Shown in pieces: positions 1,863 through 35,814 of a DNA stretch of 64,000 nucleotides (the first letter of the stretch is position 1; each line of letters begins with the position of its first letter). The notes under the pieces were generated by a model that was not told the origin of the DNA, ran no database searches, and saw nothing but the letters and a program-made list of their open reading frames with translations. The position numbers were made by a program, and so were the translations under genes. The DNA lies in contig NC_068987.1 in the NCBI RefSeq assembly GCF_001194135.2, forward strand, positions 47,364,802 through 47,428,801, written 5' to 3'. The stretch is from Octopus bimaculoides (lineage: Eukaryota).

Positions 1863-1915
1863 GTATTCTTCATCAAGAGACTATCCATCTAAAGTTAAAC
1901 ATGTATTTAGAAAAT
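1863..1915 (+). CDS. Gene A coding exon (53 nt, phase 2 to 1): YSSSRDYPSKVKHVFRK
   Basis: Acceptor ctttcttatttttccag, donor AAAAT|gtgagt. Open in the frame that joins exon 3773. Same phase pattern as the corresponding gene B exon (37716-37753). Confidence 0.65.
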
Positions 1916-3772
1916 GTGAGTATCCATAAATATGAAATCTTTAACCCTTTCATTACCATATTTCTGTTTTTGTTTCAGTTACTTTTTAAAACAATGGGGG
2001 AACTTAACAAAATAACTTTTGTCATTGTTCAAGGTAGTTTCTAAAACATAACATGAAACTTTGATGGAAGATTTTTTATTTAACCCTTGTGTTATCATAC
2101 TTCTGTTGAAATAAACTCTCTTTGTTTCAATTAATTTTGAAAATAATGAAGAATTTAGTAAAATAACTTTGAAGTGTTTGGTGTTGGGAAGGGCATCCAA
2201 CTATAGAAACCATGTCAAAGTAGACATTAGAACTTGATGCAGTCCTCTGGTTTGTTTGATTATTCTGTCAAACCATCCAAACCATGCCAGTATGGAAGGC
2301 AAACTTCAAATGGCAATGATTATAAGATCAAAATTTCCTCAAATTTTGGCACAAGGCCTGTAATTTCATTGGCCAGTACATATTTTATCAACCCAAAAGA
2401 ATCATAAGCAAAGTCAACTTCAGGAGTATTTGAACTCAGAATGTAAAGACAGACGAAATGTTGCTAAACATTTTGCCTGGCATGCTAATAATTCAACCAG
2501 CTCACCACAGAGAAAATATATATCAAGACAACAAAGGTAATATTAAGAAAAAATTTGTAGCAAAATATAAATTTTATATATCATTTAAATGGTAGGGTGA
2601 CTCTCACTCTTGGTGTGTCTGTATGTGTATAGTGGGAATATTTCATTGTATACTGTCTGCTGTCAAGTCTACATCTGCCAGAATACTCTCATATCTCTCT
2701 AACACTGTTTTCATTCTTCTATCCCTCTCACTGTGTCATATGACTAAAGATGGCAGTGAATTTCTCCTCCTCATTGTAACTAAGGATGTCACTGGACCTA
2801 TCTAACCCTCTCATCTCTTCAACACAACCCCTGCCTCTCTCATTCTCATCACCTTCTATGTCTTACTCATCATGAGGCTTATAGATAAGGGATCATATCA
2901 GATCTGCATGGCACCCTATCCAACTCTACCATTACCTCTTCTATCTTCCTTTCCTTGGACACTTGTTATTGACATTTACTCTTATCATTTATCCACCTCA
3001 TTTTATCTCCCCCACCCTCTTCAACCTTCCCACACACCTCACCACAGCCTTTTACCCACTGACTTTAATTCCTATTTGTTAACATCTGTATTCTGAAAGA
3101 TTCTGGGATAGCTGGTCTACTATCCCATTGTTCATGCTGTCAGCCACCTAGAAAACCCCAGAATAGTTGAACTAGGTATGTTACTATCCATCTCTCTCCC
3201 CCTTTACCACTATCTTTCCCCCATTACTCTGTTTTTACCATCACACCCTTGCTCCTTTCATCCACTCATCCTGATTCTTTCATCTTCCTCTCTTTTATTC
3301 ACTGCCTCAACCATGTAGCCCTGAGTGAACAAAAACATATATAAAGTGGTGAGGGCTATTAAGATAGAAAGCAACTTCACTAATTGGTGCCAAAAAATAA
3401 ATTCCATGTAGAGCACTCTGTAAAGTGGTTGGTAACTGAGTGGAAACATGGGGAGAGGTTGAGAGGACCCTTTAGGCTTGTTGATACCTGATAATCTGTC
3501 AAGTATTGTGATAAAATGCACCCAGTCCACTCTGTAAAGTGATTGGTGTTAGGAAGGGCATCCAACCTTAGGAAACCAAACTGTAAATTAAATGTAATAA
3601 CAAGGTGTAGTCCCCAACCCATCCAGGAGGGCAGTAATTCTGAATATGAACTGGTTTGGACCATGATGACCTGGTCAACTCCTACAAGCATTCTACAGCA
3701 AAATTATGATTCAATTTTTTGAAATTAAAAATATTTTTTTTCATTTTATCAATTTTGTCAATTCACTTTAAG

Positions 3773-3916
3773 GTTCTAACAACACTTCTGACGGAATTTT
3801 GAAGCAATATTTCCACATCTGCAATGACAGTGCTCGAGAAAACCTTATTGCCAGTATCAACATGGACAAAAATGAGTGTTTGCAAGACCTGAAAGTCACT
3901 GAAGAAAGATTGGCAG
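3773..3916 (+). CDS. Gene A coding exon (144 nt, phase 1 to 1): SNNTSDGILKQYFHICNDSARENLIASINMDKNECLQDLKVTEERLA
   Basis: Acceptor attcactttaag, donor GGCAG|gttagt, open frame. Colinear similarity to gene B exon 35674-35814. Confidence 0.8.
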
Positions 3917-4529
3917 GTTAGTGAAAAAACAGAGACTTCCTTCTTTTATTTCATCTTTTATATAGATTGATGGTGGTCTTGGTCTTATATTATAATTCCA
4001 GTCACATCTAATATGATTTATAGGAATATTAAATTGATCTAAGTACTTGGCTGGTACTTTATTTTAGTTCAGTCCTCACTGCCTCACTCAGGCAGTGCAT
4101 ATAGGCTAAAGAGTCAAACACTTGTGATTCTGAGATACCTGCTGATAATATTGAAGGGTTTCCAACTTTGCAATGAATTTAGAAGAGCTTGCAAAATCTG
4201 AGTAGCTCCTGCAGTTTCAGCATGGGACAAAGTATCTCTGATGCTTATTTCACCTTATATAGAACCCAAAAGAATGAGAGGCACAGAGGATCTCAGTAGG
4301 ATTTGAATTCAGAATGTGAGAAGCCATCACTAAATATCACAGGCATTTTGTCTTACGATTCTGCTAATCCACCATCTTAATAGCAACATCTTGATTGTCA
4401 TGGTTGTTGGTGGTGACGTAGGAGTGGCAGGGGCAAGAGTGTTCATGCCCAGTCAGCCCTAATTCTGCAGATCTGTGATCAAATATGTCCTTCCTTTCAT
4501 TGAAATTGTAAACTTATAATCTTTTCTAC

Positions 4530-5030
4530 AATAGGTGCAAGGCCTGAGATTTGGGAAAAAGTTGCTATTGATTACGTTGACCTCTAGTGCTCAACTGGAA
4601 CTGATTTTATCAACCCCAATGGGATGGAAAGCAAAGTCAACCTTGGTGGGATTTGAACCTACAATGTAAAGGTCACTAAGCATTCTGTCTAGTATGCTAA
4701 TAATCCACAAGCTCGCCACCTTGATAATAATGATAATGATAATTCTTTATAATTTTGGCAGAAGGCCAACAATTTTGGAGAGAAGGGAAAATCGATAACA
4801 TTGACCCCAGTATTTGTCTGGTACTTATTTTATTAACCCTGAAATGATGAAAGACAAAGTCAACCTTGGCAGCATTTGAACTTAGATTGTAATGCTAAAA
4901 GAAATGCCACTCAGCATTCTGACCCAAGATAACAATTCTGCTAGCTTGCCCTATCTTAATAATAATAATGATGATTATGATGATGATGATAAATAATCTT
5001 TATGTAATCCTTTCTACTATAGGCACAAGG
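4530..5030 (-). mobile_element. Cluster of 2-3 tandem Nin-domain tRNA-SINEs in the last intron of gene A
   Basis: Repeated core (gaaag)gatgaaaggcaaagtcaaccttggc..atttgaac separated by (AAT)n tracts; A/B-box-like head on the - strand. Confidence 0.75.
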
Positions 5031-34751: not shown

Positions 34752-35339
34752 TTTAATTATAAAAATATGATGGGATTTTTTCTAAACTTCAAATGGATAT
34801 GTGGGGTCTAGTAAAGTAAAGCAGGAATCAATGAGTCGATAAGTAAAAATGGTTGAGACACATTGATGTAAAGTGACTGATGTAAGGAAGGACATCCAGC
34901 TGTAGAAGCAATGCCAAAGCTGACAGTCCTCTGGCTTGCCAGTTCCAATCCATGCCAGTATGGAAGTTGGATGTTATAAATGATGATGATGATGATCATC
35001 ATGAAGCCCACTCATCTAATATTCCTTCCAGCACATGCATACTTACAGCTTGCATGCACACACCACTACTCATACTGCCTATACATACACACATGCCTGC
35101 ACACACAAACATACACACCACTCAGCCTCTTGAGTAAACTCTTCTTACTGCTACCAGGCACACTACTATCTACGTATCATGTCTATAGACATGCCTGCAC
35201 ATGAGCCTGCATGTACACACTATGTCAAACACATAAACTTACACACACTGTTAATCTCACCAGTCAAGCACTCTCTCACATACAAATACGCTGTCCATAC
35301 ATCCTATATAAACATGCATAAATACATATACATGGACAC

Positions 35340-35387
<48 letters not shown>

Positions 35388-35673
35388 AATATGAGGGTAA
35401 TAAATCAAAATAATTTATTACCAGTGGTTAAATAAATATATAAATATATATATATATATATAAATGTACATTCAGTTCTAATATAGTCTAATATCTCACG
35501 TGCTTAATACGTATATGCTATCAAAATATATTTAAGTTTCATTTCATAATGATAAAGCATTTTGCTGACAATTTCCTTTATCAATACCTACTGCCTGCTC
35601 TAATTATTTACTGATAACATATATATATAACATATACACATGTATACATAATATATAAAACAGTTACCCTTAC

Positions 35674-35814
35674 ATTTTAGCTCACTACTCATACTGTCCA
35701 GAGCCAATGCATGTTGATCTCTATCATTTCGCATAACATCAAGGAAGGTCTGTCGCGTACTGTTATCACAGATTTTGAAGTATTCAGCAATGGAATCAAT
35801 TTCACCATCAGTAG
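35674..35814 (-). CDS. Gene B coding exon 7 (141 nt, phase 1 to 1): TDGEIDSIAEYFKICDNSTRQTFLDVMRNDRDQHALALDSMSSELK
   Basis: Acceptor ttatttatatttacag, donor AAAAT|gtaagg. Colinear with gene A exon 3773-3916. Confidence 0.85.

Follow-up and report, generated by a model that had tools for sequence, protein, structure and literature searches.

The present study concerns a window of 64,000 nucleotides (nt) from Octopus bimaculoides (contig NC_068987.1, positions 47,364,802 to 47,428,801), in which two convergent and otherwise unrelated genes, here called A and B, share a C-terminal tail that is real and conserved across molluscs. This tail, referred to below as the module, is 117-129 amino acids (aa) long and is encoded by two exons, of which the first is phase 1-1 and the second is terminal. 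It closes a predicted ankyrin-repeat protein in gene A and a protein with an N-terminal BED zinc finger in gene B. The best explanation for the whole, to which we give a probability of about 0.72, is that ankyrin repeats and the shared module formed the ancestral combination, that the module exons were copied into a BED-finger gene, and that the module serves as an oligomerisation helix. The four module exons in the window are as follows.

3773-3916, plus strand: gene A, first module exon; 144 nt, phase 1 to 1, canonical splice sites
5245-5456, plus strand: gene A, second module exon and last coding exon; 212 nt including the stop codon at 5454-5456
35674-35814, minus strand: gene B exon 6, first module exon; 141 nt, phase 1 to 1, motif Y-F-K-I-C-D-N-S-T-R
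28711-28961, minus strand: gene B exon 7, second module exon and last coding exon; 251 nt including the stop codon, end K-V-S-L-C-D-S-A-L

The coordinates and translations that a preliminary description of this DNA had given for these exons were correct, and every A and B exon boundary examined has a canonical AG acceptor and GT donor. In a BLASTP comparison, the two tails align over 113 residues with 22% identity (E=6e-8). The Smith-Waterman score of the whole modules is 105, compared to 38 +/- 6.5 for composition-preserving shuffles (z=10.3). The gapless alignment of 36 aa reported in the description was likewise borne out, its BLOSUM62 sum being 41 compared to -27 +/- 13 for shuffled sequences, none of which (0/5000) reached 41. 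The description had also placed a phase-1 intron at the same position in A and B. This was confirmed, and the intron falls into the same alignment column in 9 of 9 gene copies from six species or assemblies (A and B of the window, A of a related assembly, A and B of Argonauta, B of Sepia, and the copies of Potamilus, Ylistrum and Pecten). The intron preceding the module is also in phase 1 in every copy in which it is resolved. Past the intron the two genes had been said to remain colinear to an ELT at residues 43-45 of the last exon; the colinear ELT is there, at residues 42-44 if the split codon is left uncounted.

A profile built from both modules was run with HMMER against 1.84 billion representative proteins, that is, representatives of 50%-identity clusters. 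In the query, the serine of B's split codon had been replaced by alanine, a one-residue change that is irrelevant to the profile. Only 8 proteins were found at E<1e-3, and all of them carry the module at the C-terminus or are genomic open reading frame (ORF) fragments of it. With just 8 matches in a set of this size, the profile is unlike a generic coiled-coil profile. The search retrieved cephalopod orthologues as well as bivalve members. Collectively, the significant similarity, the common intron column and the retrieval of both modules by one profile indicate that the C-termini of A and B are homologous. Only the last two exons are homologous, so that A and B are not paralogs as whole genes; what had been described as a pair of convergent paralogs is thus upheld for these two exons and not for the genes, which encode an ankyrin and a BED protein.

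The true relatives comprise Argonauta hians GAB1598415.1 and GAB1598416.1 (named after LOC115214145 and LOC115214149), Acanthosepion pharaonis CAE1306158.1, Potamilus streckersoni KAK3593909.1, Ylistrum balloti XP_060074443.1 and Pecten maximus LOC117335584. They have the same module, intron and architectures, and the Argonauta pair are orthologues of A and B in the same gene order. A word-index protein search returned nothing for B and, for A, only one metagenomic ORF fragment; with a 9-sequence profile it returned two scallop proteins only, and the cephalopod orthologues surfaced in the exhaustive HMMER search. These orthologues share long exact words with the queries, yet the word-index search did not return them, and its null result was misleading.

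Both modules are under purifying selection, with omega estimated at about 0.09. Relative to Argonauta, omega is 0.093 for the A module, 0.088 for the B module (both exons) and 0.115 for the BED exon. For the second module exon of gene A, the comparison with the related assembly (a contig of ENA ERZ21867824, probably decapodiform) gave proportions of nonsynonymous and synonymous differences of 0.18 (pN) and 0.78 (pS, saturated), respectively.

As had been proposed in the preliminary description, the module is a coiled coil, of the canonical heptad type by its a/d periodicity and its predicted uninterrupted helix. AlphaFold2, supplied with an alignment of 11 sequences, gave a model with a pLDDT of 93, in which a helix at residues 5-15 (Y-F-x-I) is followed by a two-residue break at C-N and a helix at 18-115. 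A model of the full-length B orthologue has the same layout, with helices at 268-280 and 283-391 (pLDDT >90) and the remainder below 50. In the family the short helix has 11-13 residues with Y-[FL]-x-[IM]-[CS], and the long helix runs uninterrupted for about 100 residues and ends in K-h-x-x-C-x-x-[AV]-[LI]. In gene A the motif Y-F-x-I-C-x-x-S-x-R lies in the first module exon, together with the short helix and the first part of the long one, and the second exon carries the remainder of the long helix with the end K-I-S-L-C-V-S-V-L. A single unbroken heptad register of about 15 heptads extends over some 105 columns, with a core fraction of 0.66 at positions a and d compared to at most 0.39 in the other registers, and the 7-column gap in the family alignment preserves this register. 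Y, R, D, K, E, L, K and C are invariant in 9/9 full-length aligned sequences, and an R, a K and a C among the residues invariant in these nine occupy core d positions. Polar residues fixed in a coiled-coil core usually set register, orientation or partner choice.

These features furnish a working definition of the family: a C-terminal module with Y-[FL]-x-[IM]-[CS]-x4-R, a phase-1 intron about 36 residues past the Y, an invariant K at a core d position, and K-h-x-x-C-x-x-[AV]-[LI] near the end. The residues in this definition are common to 9/9 full-length sequences, and the intron to 9/9 gene copies.

By the searches made here, the module matches no described domain and constitutes an unnamed family with no Pfam entry or solved structure, in agreement with the preliminary description, which could not assign it to a known family. 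No Pfam model reached its cut-off for the module. The 11 members gave weak, scattered matches to 97 coiled-coil families, and CENP-H, ATG16, APG6_N, HAUS-augmin3 and SKA2 all stayed below the gathering cut-off, the commonest being APG6_N in 7/11 members. The best Pfam match of the A module was CCDC22_CC (PF05667), in which membership failed at 19.9-21.1 bits compared to the required 39.2, over profile positions 192-263 of 477 and in 4/11 members; this match is best read as generic coiled-coil similarity. Profile searches of the PDB yielded coiled-coil noise only (HA2, reovirus sigma-1, Abraxas), and Foldseek against the PDB gave 0 matches at E up to 10. Neither BESS nor the hAT C-terminal dimerisation domain was listed for the last 129 residues of B (E up to 10) or for the orthologues P0002 and P0005 (E up to 0.01). 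The database members are all named "uncharacterized", "hypothetical" or "unnamed", no domain annotation for the module was present in their entries, and no paper on them was found in the literature.

Compared to known systems, the two proteins show several likenesses in layout. GABP beta (GABPB1/GABPB2) is the ankyrin subunit of the vertebrate GA-binding protein, and its C-terminal leucine-zipper-like coiled coil drives dimerisation. It works with a separate DNA-binding subunit, which it contacts through the ankyrin repeats and not through the zipper. Gene A resembles it in having ankyrin repeats followed by a C-terminal coiled coil. However, the zipper of GABP beta has a few heptads compared to about 15 in the module, and it lacks the Y-F-x-I-C and K-x-S-L-C end motifs. 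No GABP-beta-specific match was obtained; the single GABPB1 entry among the PDB matches aligned with the generic ankyrin repeats of the Argonauta A orthologue, beside designed ankyrin proteins. The Drosophila insulator protein BEAF-32, which is Drosophila-specific, has an N-terminal BED finger, a poorly conserved middle and a C-terminal coiled-coil/BESS region for self-association. Gene B follows this layout with its BED finger, variable middle and C-terminal helical region, but no BEAF-related Pfam match was listed for its last 129 residues (E up to 10) or for its full-length orthologues (E up to 0.01). The module also greatly exceeds the BEAF-32 region in length and has a second bearer in an ankyrin protein. 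These are resemblances in layout without detectable homology. CCDC22 and CCDC93 of the CCC complex, which pair via their C-terminal coiled coils, are likewise two related proteins with long C-terminal coiled coils, but the A and B proteins are without the NN-CH domain.

Gene A is represented in the window by its last three coding exons only; the upstream exons lie off the left edge, and a search of 1-3800 for earlier gene A exons found none. The third-from-last coding exon precedes the module.

1863-1915, plus strand: gene A, third-from-last coding exon; 53 nt, phase 2 to 1, peptide YSSSRDYPSKVKHVFRK, canonical AG/GT

This exon encodes linker sequence outside the module. Its counterpart in the related assembly (5690-5742 of the contig) has equal length and the same splice-site context, and by tblastn and blastn similarity it matches positions 32203-32272 of the Argonauta locus. 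The contig of the related assembly holds the three exons of gene A at identical lengths of 53, 144 and 212 nt, with introns that cannot be aligned to those of the window. The first module exon of gene A has 83% amino-acid identity with Argonauta, and its orthologue in the related assembly has the same length and splice sites.

The Argonauta orthologue of A is GAB1598415.1 (P0003), a protein of 735 aa named "uncharacterized protein LOC115214145 isoform X1". Its N-terminus is disordered; ankyrin repeats follow at about 331-511, and a linker connects them to the module at 619-735. Ank_4 (47.1 bits) and Ank_2 (45.6 bits) scored above the Pfam cut-off in this protein, and ankyrin repeats were also found in P0008. 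By its orthologues, gene A is an ankyrin-repeat gene, the window's own ankyrin exons being placed beyond its left edge.

Gene B occupies 28711-59649 on the minus strand, as judged from the mapping of its orthologue onto the window, with seven coding exons and about 400 aa. This orthologue, A. hians GAB1598416.1 (P0002), has 395 aa, is named "uncharacterized protein LOC115214149", and consists of an N-terminal BED finger, a long variable region and the module. The exon phases of gene B are identical to those of the Argonauta gene. The exons upstream of the module are as follows.

59493-59649, minus strand: gene B exon 1; start codon at 59649, CCHH BED zinc finger
48571-48983, minus strand: gene B exon 2; 413 nt, phase 1 to 0, low complexity
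45246-45298, minus strand: gene B exon 3; 53 nt, phase 0 to 2, peptide PGEDLGETDRTQDSGVI
39676-39780, minus strand: gene B exon 4; 105 nt, phase 2 to 2, conserved island IDDCDMLESKDVIAAQIELMQ
36387-36858: assembly gap inside gene B, expected site of exon 5

The Pfam model zf-BED (PF02892) matches at 59431-59649 on the minus strand with E=4.7e-9 and 36.6 bits compared to a cut-off of 20.6, and it also matches the orthologues P0002 and P0005. Exon 1 is 87-90% identical to its counterparts in Argonauta, Sepia and transcript contigs of the Logan collection. Exon 2 has no Pfam match, and the corresponding region of the Argonauta orthologue model is disordered (pLDDT <50). The sole conserved island in the middle of the protein reads E-T-D-R-T-Q-D-S-G-V-I-S-I-D-D-C-D..E-S-K-D-V-I-A-A-Q-I-E-L-M-Q, and it is kept in Argonauta, Sepia and the Logan transcripts, that is, from octopods to Sepia. 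Exons 3 and 4 jointly spell D-S-G-V-I-S within it. The pattern D-S-G-h-x-S is that of the beta-TrCP phosphodegron; D-S-G-V-I-S fits it and, by analogy, may be a regulated-turnover or docking motif.

The preliminary description had placed a short phase 2-to-1 exon before the module in both genes. This holds for A (the 53-nt exon above), whereas no counterpart is present in the readable sequence of B: a similarity search for one gave nothing convincing, and residues 230-265 of the Argonauta B protein were unmatched anywhere in 35801-46000. In Argonauta, exon 5 of B (19213-19322 of the locus) has 110 nt and phase 2 to 1, and it lies 503 bp upstream of the module exon. Exon 5 of the window's gene B most likely sits in the gap at 36387-36858, a fourth gap that falls outside the range covered by the preliminary description (1863-35814), and the coding sequence of gene B in the window is incomplete. 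Exon 6 has an amino-acid identity of 87% with Argonauta and 80% with Sepia.

Evidence of expression and splicing, for orthologues of gene B, comes from three intronless Logan contigs of 1.2-1.5 kb (SRR27666080, SRR29271464 and SRR8281666), each with a complete BED-to-module ORF. They represent Sepia-like B orthologues and are spliced as predicted, including the junction corresponding to 35674/28961, one of those for which the preliminary description had suggested a check by spliced reads. Because the Sepia genomic B gene exceeds 11 kb, these intronless contigs are most likely transcript-derived.

The preliminary description had called the module lineage-restricted. It is not confined to cephalopods: with the same intron, it also occurs in scallops and in a freshwater mussel. 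The protein of the unionid Potamilus streckersoni (494 aa) combines ankyrin repeats with the module, and about 450 of its residues align colinearly with Argonauta A (E=4e-25). In scallops the module is annotated as a small separate protein (139 aa in Ylistrum balloti, 165 aa in Pecten maximus), and the module gene is directly preceded, on its own strand, by exons homologous to the ankyrin region of gene A. The Pecten annotation has two genes, one for the ankyrin part (503 aa; 261-5937 of the locus) and one for the module (165 aa; 10001-15576); in Ylistrum, the two parts adjoin (about 2900-5500 and 10001-12450), and only the module gene is called. The scallop arrangement reflects either gene fission or fusion relative to the mussel and the cephalopods, or a split gene model.

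The presence of ankyrin repeats with the module and the same intron in bivalves implies that this combination is ancestral to bivalves and cephalopods. In contrast, the combination of BED finger and module turned up in cephalopods alone, octopods and decapodiforms alike, and on present sequence data it appears to be a cephalopod novelty. The three bivalve modules have the length of B, which implies that cephalopod A lost one heptad and that B gained none. The length difference of seven residues seen in the preliminary description is therefore real, but the insertion in B that it proposed is better told as a deletion in A.

The two module exons would have been copied before the split of octopods and decapodiforms, probably when the 3' end of A underwent a local inverted duplication. 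The copied exons would then have joined BED-finger exons and so created gene B, after which the A module of cephalopods would have lost its heptad. A local inverted duplication of the 3' exons of A is plausible as the simplest history. Of the tail-to-tail duplication in the preliminary description, the C-terminal homology stands, and the duplication of the 3' exons is plausible as an inference only.

At the Argonauta locus, positions 32568-32776 and 29647-29855 form a recent 209-bp inverted duplicate with 97.6% identity. The copy comprises the 3' part of the last exon of gene A and the start of its 3' untranslated region (UTR), lies inside A's own intron and adjoins a SINE-like repeat; the window is without such a copy. 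It illustrates that duplication events of this kind occur at the A locus.

With respect to function, the models make an oligomerisation helix the most likely role of the module, which would be a register-locked coiled-coil oligomerisation domain. It would multimerise the ankyrin scaffold A and would give the DNA-binding BED protein B the same assembly helix. In cephalopods, B may self-associate, dock onto A, or both.

Other explanations of the shared tail have to be weighed against this one. The similarity could be a convergent by-product of coiled-coil composition in two unrelated heptad-rich tails, as the identity between A and B is only 22% and the many matches to unrelated coiled coils (mostly at E 1e-2 to 1e-4, the lowest being 2.9e-6 in Pfam and 3.9e-7 in the PDB, and none above cut-off) indicate that such sequences cross-match easily. 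However, composition-preserving shuffles remain far below the observed score (z=10.3), both modules have a non-heptad N-terminal motif and the C-terminal K-x-S-L-C, the phase-1 intron sits in the same column in 9/9 gene copies, and the profile of A and B finds 8 proteins in 1.84e9 instead of coiled coils generally. By the shuffles, the shared end motifs, the intron column and the narrow profile matches, an explanation by composition only is effectively refuted, and its probability is close to nil. It is also highly improbable that the module is part of a transposable element (TE) protein, such as a hAT/BED transposase, whose C-terminus it would form, or the product of a Helitron-borne gene, with the two copies as TE remnants. 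Gene B does start with a BED finger, which is common in hAT transposases, and a Helitron-like ORF and a fragment of a Pif1-like helicase lie in its introns. Yet there are exactly two module copies in the 64 kb and 8 proteins at E<1e-3 in 1.84e9, the orthologues have kept synteny and introns and show an omega of about 0.09, searches of B and its orthologues gave neither a hAT dimerisation domain nor a transposase domain, and the Helitron pieces are intronic, one of the two being on the strand opposite to B. A TE origin was rejected on the two copies in the window, the tiny family size and the conserved synteny and introns; the preliminary description had likewise not taken the module as TE-derived.

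The relation between the two proteins is a different matter. A and B might, along the lines of the preliminary description, form an obligatory heterodimer through the module, so that the BED finger brings the ankyrin scaffold to DNA and the adjacency of the genes is kept for co-regulation; we regard this as rather unlikely. The two genes are convergent neighbours in Argonauta just as they are in the window, and neither module varies in the polar R, K and C at its d positions. A count of charge pairs between positions g and e', made for parallel A:A, B:B and A:B dimers, gives, for the two octopods, 4 attractive to 1-2 repulsive pairs for A:B compared to 2-4 to 6 for A:A, but for decapodiform A:B 1-2 attractive to 4 repulsive; the count is crude and inconsistent between species and was not used as evidence. 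A is one heptad shorter, and thus both end motifs cannot match in a parallel in-register pair. Furthermore, the searches recovered only the ankyrin-linked type of module (fused or in an adjacent gene) from bivalves, which implies that the ancestral mode cannot have been A:B and that the module worked without a BED partner. Convergent genes also share no promoter, and the adjacency may be a mere scar of local duplication. A more elaborate proposal makes the module a mollusc-specific heterotypic assembly domain, with A:B as a DNA-tethered scaffold and D-S-G-V-I-S directing phosphorylation-dependent turnover of B. It is a speculative proposal and is less likely still; if true, a chromatin or transcription factor particular to the lineage would have arisen by exon duplication, and the tail-to-tail gene pair would have been preserved.

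Several points weigh against the preferred history of an ancestral ankyrin-linked oligomerisation helix whose exons were copied into a BED gene. The model of the long helix is that of a monomer and is silent on partners, stoichiometry and orientation. On the g-e' count for parallel in-register dimers, A:A is net repulsive in all species and A:B is favourable in octopods and unfavourable in decapodiforms; with counts as inconsistent as these, a simple parallel dimer is not clearly favoured. Pairwise identities between the A, B and bivalve module groups are all 14-28% (about 22% for A and B), and since A and B resemble one another no more than either resembles the bivalve modules, sequence alone cannot date or polarise the duplication. 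The tail-to-tail adjacency was seen in the window and in Argonauta only, and the 8.5-10 kb flanks of two decapodiform loci hold no partner gene. The absence of BED finger and module together outside cephalopods derives from one profile search, and the separation of ankyrin repeats and module in scallops depends on annotation.

These results are of value for annotation and for the study of how domains evolve. They answer no long-standing question, and a coiled-coil assembly helix is an ordinary kind of domain. The domain family is small and is old enough to occur in bivalves and cephalopods, with no Pfam entry, structure or literature found. It offers a clean case in which a two-exon module has been reused by an unrelated BED-finger gene adjoining the likely source. 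For functional work in cephalopods, it provides two candidates, namely the lineage-specific and probably DNA-binding B and its possible ankyrin partner A.

The whole window is AT-rich (36% G+C), with abundant microsatellites and transposon debris. Its gaps and the space between the two genes are listed below.

9261-9685, 16696-17215, 19933-20549, 36387-36858, 59824-60396 and 61169-61577: runs of N (n=6)
5457-28710: space between the converging stops; 3' UTRs, transposon fragments, SINE-like repeats and three gaps

The first three runs of N all lie between the stop codon of gene A (5456) and that of gene B (28711), and zero N are present in the introns 1916-3772 and 3917-5244 of gene A and 28962-35673 of gene B. 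As these gaps are intergenic and the introns are free of N, the claims on reading frame and colinearity are independent of the gaps. The sole quantity affected by them is the distance between A and B, about 23 kb, which is uncertain. Microsatellites of (TA)n or TATG type, visible as 'YIYIYI' in ORF translations, border all five of the gaps whose flanks were inspected (every run except 9261-9685). The assembly breaks are thus probably repeat-induced rather than misjoins.

No gene A or B exon maps within 5457-28710, and no gene is called between the A and B orthologues in Argonauta. In this interval only the first 135 nt or so past the A stop (to 5591), presumably 3' UTR, and SINE-like repeats can be aligned to Argonauta. 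Exons aside, the window and the Argonauta locus have only SINE-like repeats in common.

Several transposon-like ORFs were noticed in the introns and the intergenic space. The Helitron-like ORF at 32261-33514 (minus strand), in the last intron of gene B, matches Helitron_like_N with E=8.6e-52, and the Pif1-type helicase fragment at 43101-43580 (plus strand, opposite to B), in the intron between exons 3 and 4, matches Pif1_2B with E=1.6e-16; both are remnants of Helitron-type elements. An ORF at 57066-57332 (minus strand), in intron 1 of gene B, encodes a helix-turn-helix (HTH) and resembles a transposase N-terminus, its HTH matches being weak and sub-threshold. The ORF at 1395-1709 (plus strand), in a gene A intron, looks by eye like a reverse-transcriptase fragment, without Pfam support. 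Two intergenic ORFs, 24659-24871 (minus strand) and 25884-26249 (plus strand), are mutually related and transposon-like, without a Pfam match.

A divergent neighbour lies upstream of gene B.

62413-62448, plus strand: start of the first coding exon of the upstream neighbour; begins MSTMSEPLTLEK

This segment matches positions 6747-6873 of the Argonauta locus by tblastx and blastn, and the Argonauta neighbour of B is called with L27 and PDZ domains. By this similarity, the gene at 62413 corresponds to the Argonauta L27 and PDZ (LIN7-like) gene. The start codons of B and the LIN7-like gene are about 2.8 kb apart, in an interval that includes the gaps 59824-60396 and 61169-61577 and that may be a shared promoter region. 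The order and orientations are equal in the window and in Argonauta, with the LIN7-like gene (divergent), B and A (convergent), and the stops of A and B in Argonauta are 6.8 kb apart.

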